From Guillardia theta CCMP2712 (Eukaryota > Protista > Cryptophyta): DNA of 64,000 nucleotides. The stretch spans positions 1 to 64,000 of the forward strand of contig NW_005434464.1 in the NCBI RefSeq assembly GCF_000315625.1, read 5' to 3'. Positions within the stretch are counted from its first letter, which is position 1. Every line of letters starts with the position of its first letter. The notes under the pieces are model-generated. The model did no database searches and was not told where the DNA came from. It saw only the letters and a program-made list of their open reading frames with translations. The position numbers and the translations under genes were made by a program. Positions 19,385 to 50,010 of this stretch are shown here, one piece after another.

Positions 19385-19733
19385 GTCTATCACATTTCTC
19401 TGGTCATCGCACTCAGCGCTCATCATCTCTACAACTGCTTACTCGCTTGTTGCCTCCTCCTCTCCTCCTCCTACCGGTAACGAGGATGGCCGTCGCCACA
19501 GCGATCTCCATTCCGAAAAGCCCCTTCCTTTACTTTTTTTTAAGGTTGAGTTAAATCAGAATGAGGCATCCGGACCGTACACCGTGAGAGTCCCCGGCCG
19601 CCCGGCTGGAGTCGGATCCGCTCCGACGGTCCCGGGCCCCGGGCCCGGCCGGGCCCGGCGGCCGGCGGCGTCGACGGTTCACCGTCACGGCGTGGCAGGC
19701 TGAGTCAATCACTGGCTTTTTTTAAAAAAACTT

Positions 19734-22700
19734 TTACTCAAAGTTAAGTTAAAGATCAGTACGAGGACAATCAGGAGAGTCGAGGAGGCTTGACCCTGAC
19801 ACTGTCGCACAGGCCAAACGGCGAGAAGAGAAAAGACAGCGAGAACCAAACCTAAACCTGCCGACTGCTGTCCCCCAAACTTAACTGATACCTTCACTTA
19901 ACGGCGCGCAGGACAAGTCCCCGCGCGGCCATGCCAGCGATGTCGCGGTGGCCGCCGCCGAAGGAATGAGACGCATACCGGGATGCACCCGCGATGATGG
20001 CAGCGTAGGACAGGGAGGCCTTGAGCTGACGGAAGACCCTGGACCGAATGCGTTTGCAAGTCGGATCACCTGAGACGTCTTGCGAGGCCGAGAGACCATC
20101 CAGCGCTGCCGTTTCCTTGTTCGCCGAGCGATCCGCCAGCCACCACAGAAAGCGCAACGCATCGTCCTGCAAGAGGCCATCAGTGCTGGCGATGATGGGA
20201 AGAAAGGCCTTTGGCGGGACGTGCTGAGCATATGCATTACGATGCCCTCGGATCTTCCGCTGTGCTGCCGCTTGCAGTTTGCTCCGAGCGAGGTCCGGTA
20301 TTCCATCATTGTCAAAAACATGTGACATGCTGAAGTCCAGGATTAACCCATGCCATCCGCCGCCAGTAGCCATCAGTTGTGGAAGTTCAAAGTCCCCTAC
20401 ATGATGATCTTCAGGGCCATGTTCAAGAAACGTTCTGCCTGGTGCCGGGTACGCCTTGCACGTGGACGCGGCATCTCACTCCGGAATCTTTGATGAGGGT
20501 ACTGAGGACGGCATTGCACTTCTCATGCGCATCAGTCCATAACTGGCTGCGGTGCCTGCAGGTTGCCATGTGTGTGGTCCCCCCAGGATGACGAAGAAGA
20601 TGATGGCATCGATCGCAGTGCGGCGGGAGGTCAACCGGCAATCCATGAAGAAACTTGTCAGCGGCAGCCACCAAGCTGATGGGCTGCTGCTCAAAGATCC
20701 CAAGGTTTGTACTTTCCATAGTCGAGTGCCAAATCGTGCGCTGAGGGGTAAACTGAGACAGAAGTTCATCAACCGGGTGGCCTGGTACTCGAAGGGGAGT
20801 AGAGAAGCTGGAGTGGTGTGCCAACAAAGATCTCTGGCGCTCTGAAAGGTGAGCCCGAATACTGCGGAACCGGGGAAACTCCGAGAGGAACTGAGCCGTG
20901 AGCTCCCGCTGGGCGGGCCGATGAAAAGCGCACTGCCCGACGTCCCAAATAATTCAGGCGAGGGGATCCAGCCATTGTCGCACGCCTGAGGAAGCTCCGC
21001 CAAGGAGGTGTACGCCGAGATGCCCTGCTCCATCAAGTGCCTGTGAGTGTCCAAGAAGGCAGCAAGCATGGGGACAACATCCCCAGCGTCCGCTTGCTGC
21101 GGTTGGCGGATTCGAAGCTCAGTGTCAGAATTGATCCGGTGGAAGAGTGGCGGTGTAGGGAAAGTCCAATGCTGGAAGATGGCAATTTCACCCGCCCATT
21201 TGAGAAACTTGGCAGTCGCCGACCAGAATGCGGTGTAGGCCACGCCCTCCTGCGGGGTGAACCCATCTCCTCCAGCACTATAAGGCAACTGACGTTTGAA
21301 GTAGGCGAACTGAAGGTCAGATGGAGGGGTGCCAGGGGCAGGTTGCAGGACAGATGAACCCTCCTGTGCCTGGTTCTGTGGCCACTGAAACACCTTCGCC
21401 AGGAGACGGAGATTCGCGACGTCAAAGCACTTGCACTGGGCAGCGGTCAAGGCCGGGGAGATTCCACGCAAGAAATATTGGAGGGTGGGAACGTGGGTCG
21501 TTTTCAAGAGCTGCTTGAGACCCAACGCAATGGGAAATTGTTCCAACTGGGTCAATTCAGCATTGAGGGCATTCACCTTGGCAGTGATAAACTCTTGCTG
21601 GAAGGACTGAGATCCTATCGGGATACCTCCCAGGATGATCCCCTGGCCGCGGAAGGCAAACTGCTGCAAGCCCGGGTACCTACTGCAAATATGCTCTTGG
21701 ATGGCTTGTTGCTGACTAGATTGAAGTTCACACCAGGACGAGGAGAATATCTGCGAATCCCTGGGTTGAATCTCCAATCCTAGCTCTTGTTTTAAAGTAT
21801 CAACCAGCGATGCAGTAGCCTGTGCGGCAACTGAGAGCTTTCCAATAACAGCCATGTTATCCGCATAGGCCGGGAAGACACAGTCGGGAAAGGTCTCTGC
21901 GACTTTGACCAGGGAAGGGAAGGTGGTGTGCGCAAAGAGAGCCATCGCCAAGGGGTCCCCCTGAGAAACTCCCGTGGTGGCCGAAAAAGCCCGAGTCTCT
22001 CGCTGATGTTTCAGAAATAACTTACCTGCCTGGCCATAATATTGATGAACATACGGAAGGACTCCTTGGGAAAAGTTCTCACAACGATGCTCGGGAGCAA
22101 GGAGGATGTCAAATAGCCGTTGGCGAGAGATCTCATTGAAGGCATTTCTTGCGTCGATCATGATGATTACCGTGGGATCAAAATTATCAGACTCACCTTC
22201 GCCCTGGTCTGTGAATGGGTTGGCAAAAGAATGGGGTCCTAACAGGCATTCGATGGTCTTGCAGAATTTGAGACAACCTTCCTCCAGACCCACGCAAAAT
22301 TGCAGGACCCGAGAGTGACTGAGGGTGAAGTGGCTCTCCAAAGATTTTCGGTAGAAACGACAGAAGATGCTAGACACAATCCTTCGCTCCAGGTCCCCTA
22401 TCACAATAGGTCGGATTCCGCTCTTTTCCACTGACTTGGCAGCAGGAATGAATCGCCCCCCTCTGGTGTATTCCTCGAGGAAAGCGCCCGAAGGGATTCC
22501 CAGCGCGATCGGCTTCAATATGAGGTTAATGTATCGCTGTTTGTGATCATCATGCAGTCTGAGAATGTGTCGCAGGTGCTGGAACGGTCGCCAACCAAAT
22601 TGATCAGGGGCCGAGGAAGCAGTGAATCGCCGCAGGAATTTCCCTACCTCTCGCTGATCTAAAATCTTGTCAAGCAATGAGGCCGGTTCATCGGCGATGG

Positions 22701-24160
22701 CATCGTCGAGCTGAGCACTTAGCATTTGCCTTGAGGAGCCGACTGCGTCTAGGAGCGTTGGAGGAATGGGTTCCAGTCTCGTCGGAAATTTCTCACGAGT
22801 TTGCTGCCATAGCTGCTCAAATGGATCTGGGGAGAGGCCATGGCCCACAAGCGCCTGTCGAGCTTTCTTCATATCCCGATTTTGGTAATGCTCAACAGCC
22901 GAGAGGATTTTCTTTTTCTCCAACTGCTCGCTCTCCATCACTGGCTGCTGCACGCCCGCTCTCGCACGGTCAGGTCCTTGTGGGCGACCTGCATTTTGAC
23001 GGTTAGGTTGTTGGCGCCTACCTTGCGGTGCCCGCGGTCTCGTGCCTCGTCCCGACCCAGTTAGTCCCGCCGTGGGCTGCTGCGTGACATCCTGCGGATC
23101 TCCACCGCTGCCAACCGCTGGGCCGTCTTGGTCAAAAGAAACACCCTCTTCTAGTTTCAGCAATGTCTCCCAACGCCCTTGGAGGAAATGGTGGATACGG
23201 TAGCTCACATCTCGGTTTTGTCGCGAGATTGCAAGAACTGGATTCACTCTCAGCAGGAGCAGTGGGAGACAATGCCACAAGCTCCGGATAATCTTAGCTT
23301 CCTCGCAATGCAAGTCAGGGTAACCTTGTAGCAGGTCTAACGTAAACTGTAGCGCACTCTTCCATTTATCAATCGTCTGGCGATTGGGGTGTTTGATGGT
23401 TGTAATGGAAGGATTACGAGCCAGGAGTGCCGGAAGCTTATGTGGTCCCTGTTGAGCAAAGAGAGGGAGGGCTCTGTGCCAATTCGACGTACCACAAGGC
23501 ATGTCTTGCGGACGCAGATTATGAAAGTAAGCCGCTGCGCTAGATTGCGTGCCAGGGTCTTCTGGGAAAAGATTTGCCGGTTGAGGAGGGGGCGGTGGGG
23601 GTGTAGGATTGACCGTAGGCTGATCGGTGGGTGTCCTCTGGGAGATGGATCGGCGAAATCTTGCCTGCTTCCGAGGTCTTTGGTTCCCCGAACCTCCTCC
23701 AGATCCGGGCAGCGGCGGAGGAGGCAAAGTCATCCTGCGGACTCTCAGTGAGACGCTGCAGAACGAGATTGCCCTTCCAGCATGTCAGGAGTCCGTAGGG
23801 GTTCCTGCTGTGAGCGGGGCTCAGAGTCAGAGGAGCTCTCTTGGGACACAAGGCCTGTATGAGGAAAGTGGGACGACGAGCCCGGCGTGCCAGTCAGTAG
23901 AGGATCAACAACAGAACTGTGATGACGGAGGATGGCAGGCCGCTTGTGCCGCGCCATGATGTCTCACAGTGATGATGGAAGTGAGAGCGGATCTTCACGC
24001 TTCCCTTGTCGCGGTTCCCTCGCTCTCGCCGTCACTGCCCACCGAAATGAAAGTGGCGAGTAGGCGCATTTCCCCTCAGTACACGCCATTTCAAAAAGCC
24101 ACTGGCATGACGGCCGTGACTGCGTCCCATTTGCATGCACTTAATTGTAATGAAACGTGA
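19734..24160 (-). mobile_element. Non-LTR retrotransposon, CRE-like clade (RT + Cys/His knuckle + restriction-like endonuclease), frameshifted
   Basis: RT motifs GIRPIVIG, IDARNAFNEISR, GVSQGDPL, YADN, LGGIPIG; CDRC...HMATC...AHE; GD...LILDFSMSH...K..H...FLPIIASTDGLL. The 5' boundary is set by the composition shift. Confidence 0.9.
19894..23733 (-). pseudogene. RT-RLE polyprotein split over three frames (20476..23733, 20423..20827, 19894..20373)
   Basis: Domain order RT, Zn knuckle, RLE continues across apparent frameshifts near 20830-20900 and 20430-20480. Confidence 0.8.
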
Positions 24161-24170
24161 GGAGACAACT

Positions 24171-24240
24171 TTTTGCGAATAAATCATAATTTTTATCTGT
24201 TTTGCGAATAAATCATTATTTTTATCTGTTTTTATAAATC
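24171..24240. repeat. Tandem repeat of about 29 bp (2.5 copies) at the left edge of the AT-rich insert
   Basis: ttttgcgaataaatcat(a/t)atttttatctg repeated. Confidence 0.8.
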
Positions 24241-24864
24241 AATTTATAATTTCAATGATTTTTATATTCAATCAAAAAATCTGTTCATTGCTCTTTATTT
24301 TCCTTACCAAATCCCTATCATATTTTATTCAATTGAAATAATAGCTGCGCATTGGTGCGGATTATCACACAAAATAACCAAAAACAAACGAGCGCACCCA
24401 CGGAGTGGGCCAGAGCCAAAACATAATATTAATTAAAATTATGAATCCTTCAAGGATCATATAAGTAATAAAAAAACCAATGTGGGGTGAAACCGCAAAA
24501 TATTAAACACGTTGTTTTTGCGAACCCCCCTAAGTAACAAAATAATCTATCCCCGCCGCCACCCTCCGCCCCCTCCGCCTCTACCCCCCGCCTATTTCAC
24601 ATAACGGCTTAATTTTTCTTTTCTTTTTTTTTTCCGCTCTATTACATGCTTAATTTATTTGGCGGGGGGGACGGGGGGGAAAACTCCATTTTTCCATAGC
24701 TATATATATATGCCCACATGCCGGATGGTCTAAATATATTTATCCTCAAAATCACGATTTTACCCCCCGCCCCCCCCGCCTTACGTCTATTTACCCTACG
24801 TTTACCATTCTTTCACACTCCACCACATCCAAAACATGGGGGGAGGGACCCACCCGCCTACCTC

Positions 24865-24996
24865 NNNNNNNNNNNNNNNNNNNNNNNNNNNNNNNNNNNN
24901 NNNNNNNNNNNNNNNNNNNNNNNNNNNNNNNNNNNNNNNNNNNNNNNNNNNNNNNNNNNNNNNNNNNNNNNNNNNNNNNNNNNNNNNNNNNNNNNN
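24865..24996. other. Assembly gap (N run)
   Basis: Run of n. Confidence 1.
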
Positions 24997-25005
24997 TTAT
25001 TATAA

Positions 25006-28000
25006 ATGTCTTGTGACAATAGATATCAAAATTTATATCAGTATGTCGGCACTACTAATAACACAACTCTCACGCCTATTTTTAATAAAATAAATTCAAA
25101 TATCAATGTCTTGTATAGCAATGTAGATATCCTTAATCATCAGACATCCGAACTATTTCAGAAGACTAATGATCTAGAAATTATCACCATTGAAACAAGT
25201 AATAACTTGATAGAAACTAATGATTTACTACTTATTACTAGTAATAATTTAATTGAAACAAGCAATATATTATTTAACACATCAAATTTTGTTCTAGATC
25301 TGCAATCTCTTATCAAATATAATGCTGATACCAATGAAACCATTATAACAAACAACAATAAAAATATATTATATGTCAAATATCAGACTAACCCTAATAA
25401 ATATATCATTAAATTCACACTTGAAAACGGCTCGTTTATTACAATTCAACAGATTAAACAACAATTAGATGATTTAAACAACAATGCTGCCGCGCAAGAA
25501 ACCGCAAATGCTGCCCAATCCTTAGAAGATTTGGACGATACGGCTGAAAATGGTTTTAATTTATTCAATGGGTTGGGCGAAATTGTTAAGGGGGGTCTTG
25601 CAATTGGAACGGGCTTCATTGGGGGATTGATAGCGTCAGGAACAAGCACATCAAAAGCCGACGGTTTATTTATTCTCTCGTGGATTAATGTTTTAAGATT
25701 ATCATTAGGTGTTGTTATTTCTGTTCTTGAAGATGAGGTTATAAATACTAAATTACAAGGTAGAGTCATTAAAATATATTCTAGGAATCTCACAGATGGT
25801 CACAAGCTTGATTTAGTCCCTAATCAGGCATTTATATATGACGACACTTATAAAACGCTTGTTATTGATGGACAAGAACAAACAGTTTTAGACGAAAGAA
25901 ATATTGTTTTTCAAGGTGAAGAAGTTATAACATTAGGCAATGAATTAACACAAGATGAATTAAATGAATTTGTATTTGGTAGCAATTATGCACTGCAAAC
26001 ATTAAAGCAATATAAAACAATATTCAAAGGTAAAACTCTTTTTATTGATGATATTGTTGTCCCTAATATCTATGACAAAAATGAGATAGATGATATAATT
26101 GATAATACATCGAACATATTATATAATCACATATACGATGAGTCAAATGTACTATTTGATCATATATTGACTGAGTCCAATATACTATTCAACAAAATAT
26201 ATGAAGAATCAAATGTATTATATAATCACATAAGAACAAAACATACAGCTAGCACACTCATAAACGATATCAGCCCTAACTTTATAGGCAATCTTTATTT
26301 CAATGACAATCAAGAATGGGAAATATCAAGAGATTTTTACACAAAACAGCAGGGATTAGATACATTTCTATCATATCAAAATCTGGCAAGCTCAAACTTC
26401 CTAAAAACGGATGTCTATGCAAATTATCTCAATAGCTCTAATTTCCTAAAAACTGATGCCTACACAAATTTTATCAATAGCTCAAATTATGTCAATCAAA
26501 CCCAAATGGCAAATCAATTTGCTCTAATTGGCGAATCATTCACAACAAAAAAGCTTACTGTTACGGGTCCTGATAGTCTATATATAGCCGATATCTTCCT
26601 TAAATTACAGGGAAATCAATTGATACCACCAAATCTTATTAAAAATCAATTGAATGATACATACACAGTCACTTATGATAATTGGGACTTTTGGAGTGGT
26701 GGTTCTCCCTATGAAACAGTGCCAACATATCCAGCACAAGATAGGGAATGGGTAAGGTATTCTTTCGCTAATAGAACAACTGCCATCCCAGACAATTTTT
26801 ATATCGAATGTTTTGACATTAGTTTTACGAATAAATTCTCTATCTATTTTTATTATCAATTTATACCTAGTACAAATTTTATGAACCGCAAATATTACAG
26901 CGGCAAATACAATCTTTTCAATTACTATTTAGGTGGTTTAACGACCGAGAATATACCTAATAATAGAGGGTTTATTTGTTATCTAGATTATCAAATAACA
27001 CAAGATGGCTCGCTAAATATTACCAACATATCTCTTGATTTAGTGTTTGAGATATTTTATAAGAATAATAACAACGTTTTGAGCTATGAGAAGAAGACCA
27101 TAAATATAAATGATTTTGCTTATGTTTATCAAAATATTGGAGGTCCTGTTTTTAGTGTTCAAAATAGTCGCATCGCTGAACTAAATTTTTATTGCTTTGT
27201 TCTACGTGAAGATGGAACCATATTTTATACAATACGCAATCAATTTGAATTGAAGATTGAGGGGACAACGCAAATAACAAATTTTAAAGAGTTATATAAT
27301 GTCAATGATAATAATCATTTTAGAATAATAGACCACGAGCAAGGGCCAACAGGTCAAGAGGCTATAAATTATTCTAATAAACTTGATTTAATAGCAATAA
27401 GCAAATCTATATCTTGGACACTTGAGACCATAAATCTATTTTGGACTGAGAACAAGTATTCTGATGCTATCAATCAGATATTTAACAACGATTTATCGGC
27501 AAAGATTAGCGGTAAATTAGAGGTTGATTTTATAGATATTAAAAGGGGTAATCTTAGCGTTATAGATTTGAGCACGCAAACGGTTGTAGCTCAAAACATG
27601 TCTGTGCAAAATGTTGATATATCAACAGTTGCCACAAGCCTTATCACAAGTGGTGGAGTTGGTAGGAGGAGTTTATCTCTAGGAGGAACAACGGCAGTCA
27701 CAAAGGTGACTGATATATATGATGACCAAAATAGAACCGGAATTGTTAAGATAGCATATGATAATACAACACAACAAAACATATCAACAATAGAAAATTT
27801 TCAATTAAACTTTACAAATACAAAAGACGGGAATGTTTCAATTACATTAGATAATTATAATGATGTTAACATTGCCTTGCCTGATGGTATAGCAGGGCCA
27901 CAAGGCGCAACAGGACCGCAAGGAGCAACAGGACCGCAACTTGACTGAGGAGCAACAGGACCACAAGGCGCAACAGGACCGCAAGGAGCAACAGGACCGC

Positions 28001-29817
28001 AAGGAGCAACAGGACCACAAGGAGCAACAGGACCACAAGGAGCAACAGGACCACAAGGAGCAACAGGACCACAAGGCGCAACAGGACCACAAGGCGCAAC
28101 AGGGCCCCAAGGCGCAATAGGACCCCAAGGCGCAACAGGAGCACAAGGACCAGCAGGCACAAACTGCCCTGAGATTGTCTTTTTAGATAGTCAAAATAAT
28201 GAGCTTTTAAGATTTGGCGATTCAATCGTTTCAACTCAAAGCGTTATATTGCCTAGCACAGGCGTAGAATCATATAACTTTGACCCTGCGCAATTCATAG
28301 TCAATCAAACAAATGATGTGTCAATATATGACCACATTCAAATAGAGACATATAATCAAACAAATACAGCTTTATATTTAACGTTATCAAATAGAACTGT
28401 ATCAATTAATTTCCAAGATAAGTTCTATGATAATGTTATAATAAATACCGATGCTTATAATTTTCAATATTCTAGCAGTGGTACTAGTTATTTAAACCCT
28501 AGTATCGAATATACTGGTCCAATTCCTGATATAGCTTGGTACAAATTTGATGATTCTTTGGCTGATACTTTATCCCTAAAACCTGATGTACAAATAGCTT
28601 ATGGCGGTCATTCATTTGCGTCTCATACAGTAAAAACAAATAAAAAAAGTCTCTCTCTCGATACTATTAATATTGATGGGTTGGCATATACAAAATGGAA
28701 TAATGGATATGCTAATTATGGCAATGACCCTATTAATTCTGTTGGTGTAGCGATTAACATTTCTAATTCTTGGAATAATTCAGAGGACAGATTTGCTGTT
28801 GAATATATAGGATATTTTTATACAAATGATTTGTCTGGTGTGTTCACATTTTATACGAACAGTGATGATGAAAGCTATCTTTGGGTCACTGTAGGAGATA
28901 CAGAAACATTAGTCGTTAATAATGGTGGAACTCATGGCACACAAGAGCGGTCAGGAACTATCTTTTTAGAAAGAGCATATCAATATCATCGAATAAGAAT
29001 AAGATTCAGTGAAAACACTGGAGGGAGTTCATTGACTGTGTCTTTCTCACATCCATTCAAGACAAAGACAACTGTAGGTTTAGGTTTTTATTACAATGTT
29101 TTAAATACAATTGTAAAATTGCCATCAATAGATTATAATGGTTTTTTTACGTGTTCTTTTTGGTTGTATATCAAAAGCTATGATGCTTATAACGGTAATA
29201 CTATCATCGATTTAAACAGTGGTATAAATATAAATAGTGGTGGGGCTTATGGTATCAGAATATATATAATTTCAGGACAAATAGCCGTAGAAGTTAATTA
29301 TTCGACATCTGCTGTATCATATTTTTACTATAATTTAAATAGGTGGGACCATTACACAATAACAATTGGAGGCGCTGGTATCATTTTATATCAAAATGGA
29401 ATTCCTTTTCAAACAAATATACCAACATCATATTTACAAAGTATGACTTGGTATAAATCTTTACTTGGAAACATCTATCCATCAAAGGGTAATTTTCAAA
29501 GTTTGCAATCGTACTATCAAGATTTAAGATTTTTTAATAGAGAATTGACTCAGAATGAAGTAAGAGATATAATTGGATATAATGGTGTTGGTTCATTGAG
29601 CGTTAAAGAGACAATTCTTCCATATACTAATGCCGAGATTGAAAATAAGATTGATAACAAGATAGATAATATTGTTATTCCAACAGGTTATTCAGATATA
29701 AACACAGCAGCCTACCTTGATTCTATAAACAATGCTTTGATAAGTGACATTCCGACATCATTTGATTATGATACTCAAATAACTGGAAAGCCTGATTTAT
29801 TTGTCGGAAGATACTGA
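25006..29817 (+). pseudogene. About 1600-aa virion fibre-like protein (TSN repeats, collagen GXY, PA14 nested in LamG/ConA), interrupted by one in-frame stop
   Basis: ORFs 25006..27948 and 28249..29817 are in the same frame and joined by open (GPQGAT)n codons. PA14: FAVEYIGYF...[11 protein letters not shown]...NNGGTHG...SENTGG. LamG: AWYKFD...FTCSFW...LYQNG...DLRFFNREL. Confidence 0.8.
27892..28158 (+). repeat. 18-bp collagen-coding minisatellite (GGACCRCAAGGMGCAACA)n
   Basis: Tandem 18-mers encoding GPQGAT. Confidence 0.95.
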
Positions 29818-29852
29818 CATTCAATACTATTGAATGTCAGTATCTTCCGACA
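29802..29852. repeat. Perfect 51-bp palindrome (25-bp arms, 1-nt centre)
   Basis: tgtcggaagatactgacattcaata-c-tattgaatgtcagtatcttccgaca. Confidence 0.97.
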
Positions 29853-30039
29853 CTGTGCAACTTCCATGTTGGCAGTGACACTCGGACGGCGCCGCGGGCG
29901 TGACTCATGATCGGACGCCGCCGGCGCCGGGCCTCGGAAGGGTGGCCTGAGCCACCAGATACCGTACGCCGATATCGCTCATCATCTCACCCCATCCTCG
30001 TCCTGGCACGTCTCCGTTGACTGACGCTTTTGTAACGGG

Positions 30040-48442: not shown

Positions 48443-48512
<70 letters not shown>

Positions 48513-48627: not shown

Positions 48628-48865
48628 CGAGACTCAGACATAGGCTCGGCGAGTCGGGCATGGCCTGAGATAAAGCGAACTTCGGACTCGCCGCCGAAGT
48701 AAGCGTCGTCAAGAGCCCCCGCCGCCGGCGGTCGCGGCGGCCCCGGCTCAGTGCCGGGCCGCGCTAGACTCCGGGGCCCCGGCACGGCGGCTGACAGTGA
48801 GTGGCAGCCCGGCGGTGTCCGGCGGTGCTCAGCCCGGCCTGGCGGGACTCTCACTGACTGAGCCT

Positions 48866-49416
48866 TTACTCAAAGTTAAGTTAACTTGAAATGTGACAGC
48901 CTGGTGAGCTATTGTCACTGGCACAGCACGGTGACTCAGAGTCTGACGGTCGCAAGTTGCTTCGGATGAATCTCTAATGTTGAACTTAAACTCCGTATGT
49001 TAACTTGATCATGGCCGGGCGGGCCCCACCGTCACTGTGACGGTGGTAGTCCGACGGCAGTGCGGCAGCAAGCCCCGGGGCCGGGCCGCGGCCCGAGACT
49101 CAGGCTTCAGTCTACCGGCGGAGTCACGGCGGCACGGTAACTCCGAGCCTGGCGGCCGCGGCCGCCGCTAAGTCGAGTCCGATCACCGGGCCGGCAGGGA
49201 GTCCGGCGGCCGCCCGGCCCGGGTCGGACTCCGCCTCAGCCTGTGCCCGCTTACTCAAAGTTAAGTTAAAAATCAGTACGAGGACAATCTTGTTTTATTA
49301 GAGGCATCAAAATCATCTTCTTTACTCAAAGTTAAGTTAAAAATAATCAGTACCATCTTATTATTCATCAGTGTGGGTTCGCCCTTCACTCAAAGTTAAG
49401 TTAAAACAAATCAGTA
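48866..49416 (-). repeat. Four short copies of the retrotransposon 3'-terminal sequence (core ACTCAAAGTTAAGTTAA)
   Basis: Copies at 48866, 49251, 49322 and 49388. 49251-49289 matches 19734-19772 at 38/39. Confidence 0.9.
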
Positions 49417-50010
49417 ATAACAATGTCATGGGGGTGGGGGTAGATACCCCTACCCCTCGGCCTCTGGGGGCCCTGCAGACCTACTCCGACAAGCTTCATG
49501 GGCGGACGTATGTCAGGGGTGGGTCATAAGTGAAATGATGGCGATAAACCAATACCAATAACATTCATTTGTATAGTGGGGTGGTAAATCATGGGGGTAG
49601 GGTGGTGGAGTCAGGAGGAATAAACTTTGCACTCGGGAATCAGATGGGGTACTGTTTTGAGTAAAGACGAAAGTAAGGGTAGGGGTACTACAAATCGGGG
49701 ATCATACCCGTATGTTGGATATTAATAATTATTCATTTGACGGGTGGGTGTTGTCCACAAGGGGTACTGACGTTTGTCATGACAATCATATGGTAGAGGG
49801 TGGGGGTGGGGTCATCGCAATCTTGGTAGGCGGAAGGAAAAATGTCGAAGGGAGATATGCTGGGGCTTGAAACAGGTGAGATTGCGACGAAGATGAGCAA
49901 GAGCAGGGCTGTCTTTTGAAGATGAATGCAATGTTGCTAGCTTGCATGCTTGTGCCTCTGCTGTTCATACACCATGATGTTTGTTCTGATCATATCTAGA
50001 GGCATCCACT

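Follow-up and report, generated by a model that had tools for sequence, protein, structure and literature searches.

Four same-orientation repeats beside GC-rich islands in Guillardia theta as probable tail-only stubs of a LINE

The four short, same-orientation repeats (stubs A-D) described here are probably tail-only stubs of a young, dispersed Guillardia theta LINE, left by abortive target-primed reverse transcription (TPRT) at the edges of GC-rich islands. They lie in a stretch of 64,000 nucleotides, referred to below as the window, which also holds a full-length copy of the element. Because the element leaves such tail stubs all over the genome, the array is not a CRISPR-like record; it is an ordinary LINE by-product in extreme form. 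The present analysis adds a quantified polar association of the stubs with GC-rich palindromic islands, a genome-wide count of tandem stub pairs and a dissection of the array.

The repeats are the 5'-truncated tail of a retrotransposon

Five exact plus-strand matches to the 17-mer ACTCAAAGTTAAGTTAA were found in the window, at positions 19736, 48868, 49253, 49324 and 49388, compared with none in 100 shuffles. The start-to-start distances among the four array copies were 385, 71 and 64 bp, and in three of these copies the plus strand continues through a variable A-rich run into ATCAGTA. The only reverse transcriptase (RT) ORF of the window is encoded on the minus strand (Table 1), so the motif reads in element sense as TTAACTTAACTTTGAGT followed by AAAG; it is the last piece encoded by the element. 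Positions 49250-49289 matched the end of the element (19733-19771) at 38 of 39 positions, the sole mismatch being GATTTT versus GATCTT. A sequence-only reading that preceded this analysis had reported the four copies and the 38/39 match, and the exact positions confirmed both. The degenerate copy that it placed near 19529-19566 proved to be real though diverged: the minus-strand tail copy at 19532-19574 aligned with a score of 29, compared with a maximum of 22 in 500 shuffles. Tandem Repeats Finder called no tandem repeat in A-B-C, and the intervening sequences are therefore unrelated to each other.

Table 1. Features of the stub array and of the source-type element in the window
Feature	Position	Strand	Description
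Stub A	49384..49416	-	33-nt tail-only copy; starts TACTGAT; 3-nt insertion in T-run; ends GAGTGAAG
Spacer 1 (A/B)	49360..49383		unique AT-rich local DNA
Stub B	49320..49352	-	33-nt tail-only copy; 5' end as in A; different 3-nt T-run insertion
Spacer 2 (B/C)	49290..49313		unique in genome
Stub C	49250..49289	-	40-nt tail copy; 38/39 versus tail of the element at 19.7 kb; 3' end abuts GC-rich tract
GC-rich tract	49041..49250		at least 76% GC; made of short palindromic words
Stub D	48864..48884	-	21 nt; only the terminal hairpin-sized tail piece; 3' end 9 nt from next GC tract
Second GC-rich palindromic-word tract	48691..48850		3' side of stub D
Possible micro-stub TTTGAGTAAAG	49656..49666	+	11 nt, opposite orientation; borderline, chance match possible
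Diverged older tail stub	19532..19574	-	GC tract 19591-19700 between stub and tail of the full-length copy
Source-type LINE copy	19731..24099	-	4.37 kb; RT ORF 20476-23733

An ankyrin-repeat ORF ends on one side of the locus (48090), and a Sec14-like gene apparently starts on the other, near 49843; the array thus occupies promoter-side intergenic DNA, with stubs A-D ~430-980 bp upstream of that start. A one-stranded swarm of GGGGT/GGGTGG words (49426-49830) occupies the interval between the stub array and the start of the Sec14-like gene (ATG near 49843, introns). The local layout is GC island, AT linker, G-rich tract and gene start, and the AT linker here consists of LINE stubs. Just upstream of the first GC tract, the hexamer AGGAGC is perfectly repeated 11.7 times as a microsatellite (48443-48512).

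A search of the genome (87 Mb in 669 contigs) returned 1,207 exact copies of the 17-mer, 650 forward and 557 reverse, compared with 0 and 1 for the reversed control. A sample of 101 copies was taken with 3 kb of context and read in element sense. Similarity to the element extended upstream of the motif by anything from 0 to >1,400 nt and had a fixed end just after GAGTAAAG, GAGTAAA(G), in every sampled copy, with unrelated sequences downstream. From the variable upstream similarity, the fixed stop and the unrelated downstream flanks, the motif is read as the element's own tail, the fixed 3' end of a non-LTR retrotransposon with variable 5' truncation. The extension beyond the 17-mer had a median of 20 nt, which corresponds to an insert of ~40 nt in all; it was ≤30 nt in 75 of the 101 copies, ≤1 nt in 13 and >1,400 nt in only 3. 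The sequence-only reading required other copies of the element to end in this motif, and all long copies, including the three other full-length ones, do so at the same base.

Target site duplications (TSDs) of at least 7 bp were present in 22 of 98 copies, compared with 1.2% in controls with mispaired 5' and 3' flanks. Examples are L012, a 22-23-nt insert with an 8-bp TSD, and L020, a 38-nt insert with a 10-bp duplication. Since duplications flank such short inserts, the stubs were inserted short and are not remnants of deleted long copies. The variable 5' ends, the fixed 3' end and the TSDs agree with the earlier proposal of extremely 5'-truncated TPRT insertions. No TSD was found for stubs A, C and D, nor for 41 of the 98 sampled stubs in a narrow search, so some stubs may enter by a different route. 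Between tail and duplication, 3-9 extra bases were present in 9 of the 22 TSD-defined insertions, and 14 (T7A7) in the full-length copy of the window.

Several further features of tail copies were recorded. Some 3'-junction fillers look self-templated (snap-back), namely T7A7 at 19717-19730 and that of L061, where the extra bases end in GTC and form the palindrome GTCCGGAC with CGGAC of the duplication. The older tail copies L004, L017, L039, L051, L074 and L082 carry small internal insertions that make short inverted repeats or palindromic words (CCGCGG, CTGAG..CTCAG, GACAG..CTGTC, GTAC-A-GTAC), the same vocabulary as that of the GC-rich islands. LINE copies could serve as before/after markers for a palindromic-word mutational process. 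At L074 (C5:175676) and L086 (C5:1001610), younger LINE copies with the TSDs GATCCTCG and GTCCTCGT, respectively, are inserted into older tail stubs at almost the same position, a hint that the element also accepts its own tail as a target.

The source-type element and its protein

The full-length copy in the window is bounded by a 7-bp TSD, GCCAGTG (19710-19716 and 24100-24106), and the 14-nt filler T7A7 between its tail and the TSD is a perfect palindrome. A whole-genome search with the element yielded three further full-length copies of ~4.37 kb with 98-99% identity and many truncated ones. Two indels private to the window copy, at 20918-20919 and 20424, disrupt the reading frame that joins the RT to the CCHC motif and the nuclease-like part. 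In L060 and L081, the last 448 codons, which are interrupted in the window copy, form one open frame. No description of G. theta non-LTR elements was found in the literature searched.

The RT domain was matched by Pfam RVT_1 (E = 4.5e-8, 33.5 bits against a cutoff of 29.6). The best PDB match was the Bombyx R2 protein 8gh6, with residues 523-664 aligned collinearly to 525-667 at a weak E value of 0.021. The catalytic box reads YADN instead of the canonical YxDD (YADD) in 13 of the 13 genomic copies that span the site (21849-21872 in the window, minus strand), and in one of these, C52, the Asp codon before the Asn is mutated. As YADN occurs in all 13 copies, including those only 82-88% identical, it is a trait of long standing in the family rather than damage to a single copy. 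In the 448-codon C terminus of L060, the pattern C-x2-C...H-x4-C followed by GDFEL...ILDFS...K was recognized by eye (CCHC, PD..D..K-like). This nuclease-like C terminus gave no sequence match in Pfam or PDB (phmmer, three pieces); a single-sequence AlphaFold model had a pLDDT of 37 and was unusable, and the ESM Atlas offered a weak zf-RVT lead only. Pfam detected no APE nuclease domain in the element ORF. The element is tentatively classified as a LINE of R2/CRE type (restriction-like-endonuclease group), with a putative nuclease whose motifs were assigned by eye.

For the last ~25 nt of the element RNA a small hairpin preceded by a U-run was predicted, with a z score of -1.7 that does not distinguish it statistically. 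The shortest stubs correspond to this predicted terminal hairpin. An AT-rich island (24001-30000) with 33-36% GC, compared with ~52% around it, was observed in the window; it holds two plus-strand ORFs, one of 980 amino acids without a Pfam match (25006-27948) and one of 522 amino acids with PA14 and Laminin_G_3 domains (28249-29817).

GC-rich islands, stub clusters and the proposed mechanism

GC tracts were defined as 50 bp with at least 76% GC starting ≤120 bp from the stub. Such a tract was present 3' of 42 of 101 copies (42%) and 5' of 24 of 98. In the outer flanks of these loci the corresponding background frequency was 2.5%, and over the whole window it was 2.6%; the flanks include genes, and the intergenic enrichment is smaller, perhaps ~6-fold rather than 17-fold. 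Most tracts start within 70 nt of the stub, the words CCGGG, GGCCC and CGGCC are enriched 6-17-fold in the flanks, and the association is common to short and long copies. The tract was located outside the duplication in 10 of the 22 TSD-defined insertions on the 3' side (start ≤70 nt) and in 4 on the 5' side. As the tract is outside the TSDs, it is pre-existing target DNA and not written by the insertion. An extended TSD search for insertions that include the tract, with the duplication past it, gave no case.

At the array, the common orientation of stubs A-D follows from this polarity of the element 3' end toward the GC tract. The tail of the full-length copy also faces a tract, with the old stub on its far side (Table 1). 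As single-stranded DNA, the tract at 49041-49250 folded better than 200 of 200 shuffles (z = -3.0), unlike the tract at 48691-48850, the fold of which was not better than all shuffles. Other arrays that lie against GC tracts are L026, L066, L088, L091, L092, L095 and L096. The stubs mark the GC-island edges of Guillardia promoters in a polar fashion and thereby offer a handle on the nature of the islands, for example as accessible or structured DNA.

The pile-up of insertions at a hotspot, which the sequence-only reading had suggested for this locus, turned out to be genome-wide and very strong. Within 300 bp of 90 anchor stubs, 28 further tail-like hits were found, or 0.58 per kb compared with 0.036 per kb at 300-1500 bp, a density 16 times that of the outer flanks. 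The reversed control gave no tail-like hits. In orientation, 19 of the 28 nearby hits were inverted and 9 were the same. Genome-wide there were 32 close same-orientation pairs, of which 22 are separated by 36-66 nt and 10 by 5-35 nt; the controls gave zero, and by our own estimate chance would yield ~0.5 in total. Arrays of at least three exact motifs occur at four loci, namely this window, C35:508506, C56:2594 and C269:41974. The units are identical at C269:41974-42182 (64 bp) and at C35:508506-508590 (34 bp), so later tandem duplication gave rise to the C269 array and to some of the C35 array.

Outward-facing inverted stub pairs, with the 5' ends joined in the middle, were seen at L014 (C2:165564), L012/L013 (C2:123632-123832), L047 and L057. 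The L012/L013 pair belongs to a larger inverted duplication of its locus, whereas L014 has the look of two tails that were primed at the two ends of a single break.

The mechanism that we propose starts from an element of 4.37 kb whose single RT ORF continues, past the RT domain, into apparent CCHC and nuclease-like motifs. The ribonucleoprotein of this element would nick DNA, and TPRT would begin at the fixed 3' end of the RNA (...TTAACTTAACTTTGAGTAAAG). In most events synthesis would stop within the first 20-50 nt, and the short cDNA would be sealed in, often with a TSD of 6-12 bp. Insertion would favor the edges of GC-rich palindrome-word islands in intergenic or promoter-side DNA, usually with the element 3' end toward the island. 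Repeated hits at one island edge in this polarity would then produce same-orientation clusters such as A-B-C-D. Candidate causes of the abortion are the YADN site, the rU:dA run just 5' of the terminal hairpin and an unstable template RNA (compare PMC11331408). The preference for GC islands may reflect protein-DNA or sequence recognition, open chromatin, or branched or cruciform DNA structure. The R2 nuclease cuts four-way junctions in a resolvase-like manner (PMC6895275).

In a more far-reaching version, which we regard as improbable, the LINE would be guided by DNA structure instead of sequence: a Holliday-resolvase-like nuclease would direct it to cruciform-prone, palindrome-word GC islands before genes, and abortive snap-back synthesis would give rise to both the stubs and the palindromic filler, such as T7A7 at 19717-19730 and the GTC next to CGGAC in L061. 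If this version were true, the LINE would be one writer of the "patchwork" GC islands in cryptophyte promoters.

History of the array and comparison with known systems

The local array was examined for traces of one or several events. Stub B is bracketed by a 6-bp duplication, AAGATG in element sense (49314-49319 and 49354-49359), of a length that arises by chance in ~4% of controls. Because stub B has this duplication of its own, spacers 1 and 2 are read as one older local stretch split by B. Whether the spacers are copies of a repeat, or of another locus, was tested by a genome search. Both are unique: neither the 32-mer at 49353-49384 (spacer 1) nor the 30-mer at 49290-49319 (spacer 2) has a second copy in the genome at ≤3 mismatches. 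Together with the lack of relation between the spacers, this uniqueness and the duplication around B argue that A-C are separate insertions into local DNA. The earlier suggestion that each insertion added unrelated sequence is consequently not supported here, in view of the AAGATG duplication and the single local stretch; a small part of it survives elsewhere, in the extra bases of the nine TSD-defined insertions and of the full-length copy described above. Nor is an ordered record of insertions supported, since no polarity of ages is readable and B is nested between A and C.

Both A and B start with TACTGAT, and each carries a 3-nt insertion in its T-run, a combination found in only 3 of the 1,207 copies. 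This rare insertion and the common 5' end argue that A and B are not fully independent events. Their likeness could be due to one stuttering event, to one variant RNA, or to slipping at the U-run linked to early abortion; T-run irregularities are common in other stubs (e.g. L025, L062, L088 and L090).

Of the other histories considered for the array, the least unlikely, though still clearly less probable than separate insertions, is that A and B, and perhaps C, stem from one stuttering insertion in which the RT jumped from template end to template end and laid down tails and fillers in one pass. The likeness of A and B speaks for it, and comparable structures exist elsewhere. L026 has two tails 18 nt apart within a single 10-bp duplication, TAACCAAGTT, and spacerless head-to-tail joints occur in L066, L091, L094, C33:412910, C65:459124 and C304:19175. 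With L026 and the direct joints of L066, L091 and L094, single-event composites probably do exist in this genome, although L026 is also readable as two nested events. R2-type RTs are known to jump end to end between templates and to add non-templated bases (Bibillo & Eickbush 2004 and Upton et al. 2021, as cited in PMC11581009; also PMC6895275). At the present locus, however, the duplication around B is consistent with its separate insertion into a spacer that already existed, no donor template for the 30-35-nt spacers was seen in the genome at ≤3 mismatches, and A-C as a whole is not enclosed by a duplication. Local tandem duplication of one stub with its flank, followed by divergence, is very improbable. 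It has precedents in the tandem arrays of C269 and C35, and A and B are alike in length and unit size (64 and 71 bp). The spacers of A, B and C are unrelated, however, whereas the stubs are ~90% alike; besides the negative Tandem Repeats Finder result, a repeat search of the window aligned only the stubs.

We give the lowest probability, close to nil, to the motif being functional in itself, as a target site, as a spliced-leader exon with a GT donor, or as a repeat-spacer memory or small-RNA locus. In minus-strand reading, all copies have ...CTTTGA|GT(A/G)A, which resembles an exon with a 5' splice site, and the spacing of 64-71 bp resembles a repeat-spacer array. The published G. theta spliced leader, CTCGGCGGCTGGTCAAG (Roy 2017, PMC5619915), has a different sequence and is absent from the window, and the spliced-leader version is thereby refuted. 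The target-site version, raised as an alternative in the sequence-only reading, is likewise refuted: the flanks 3' of GAGTAAAG are unrelated among copies and on the 5' side the match to the LINE continues over variable lengths, a pattern opposite to that expected of a target site. For the memory or small-RNA version, no Rfam family matched in the region, and the copies are irregularly spaced and present in both orientations genome-wide. A CRISPR-like memory array was also rejected for the ragged 5' ends, the irregular spacing, the TSD of stub B and the lack of any other copy of the spacers in this genome.

Read as probable tail-only stubs, the array is not a memory or repeat-spacer system to pursue. 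The family is a natural case of almost always abortive TPRT, with >1,200 stubs and a median near 40 nt. Together with the family-wide YADN, this could inform processivity work on R2-type enzymes, which are now used for gene insertion. Elsewhere in the genome, the abundant stubs can be mistaken for recombination sites, leader relics or targets, and annotators should mask them.

With CRISPR-like arrays and the relic spliced-leader arrays of dinoflagellate retrogenes, the array shares short identical motifs in one orientation and unique intervening sequence of tens of bases. It differs from both in its irregular distances (385, 71 and 64 bp), in ragged 5' ends of the repeats, in the occurrence of both orientations genome-wide and in the origin of the repeats from a retrotransposon tail; no associated machinery or leader is present.

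Elements of the R2 clade insert site-specifically into 28S rDNA, and those of the CRE/SLACS/CZAR clade into spliced-leader RNA genes. The G. theta LINE resembles R2 and CRE/SLACS-type LINEs in its single long ORF with a central RT, the Bombyx R2 protein 8gh6 being of the same size and aligned at the same position. Like R2/CRE-type LINEs, it has a defined 3' end without poly(A) and the hallmarks of TPRT, and apparent CCHC and PD..D..K-like motifs (by eye) follow its RT. The extra bases at its 3' junctions recall R2-type elements, and its head-to-tail joints are compatible with template jumping. In contrast to R2, it is not specific for 28S rDNA, as its copies are spread over many contigs with diverse flanks. 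In contrast to CRE/SLACS/CZAR, it is not specific for the spliced leader, which is absent from the window, and the 3' flanks of the 101 copies are unrelated. Whereas R2 and CRE elements are site-specific, the G. theta LINE inserts at numerous unrelated sites and prefers GC-rich palindromic islands, and its active site is YADN instead of YADD.

Ordinary LINE 5' truncation, as in mammalian L1 and in R2 transgene insertions, likewise gives dead-on-arrival copies with a common 3' end, varied 5' ends and TSDs. The truncation in G. theta is far more extreme than that reported for R2. Compared with ordinary LINEs, the median insert is only ~40 nt, three quarters are shorter than ~50 nt, and a minority of long copies gives the length distribution two populations.
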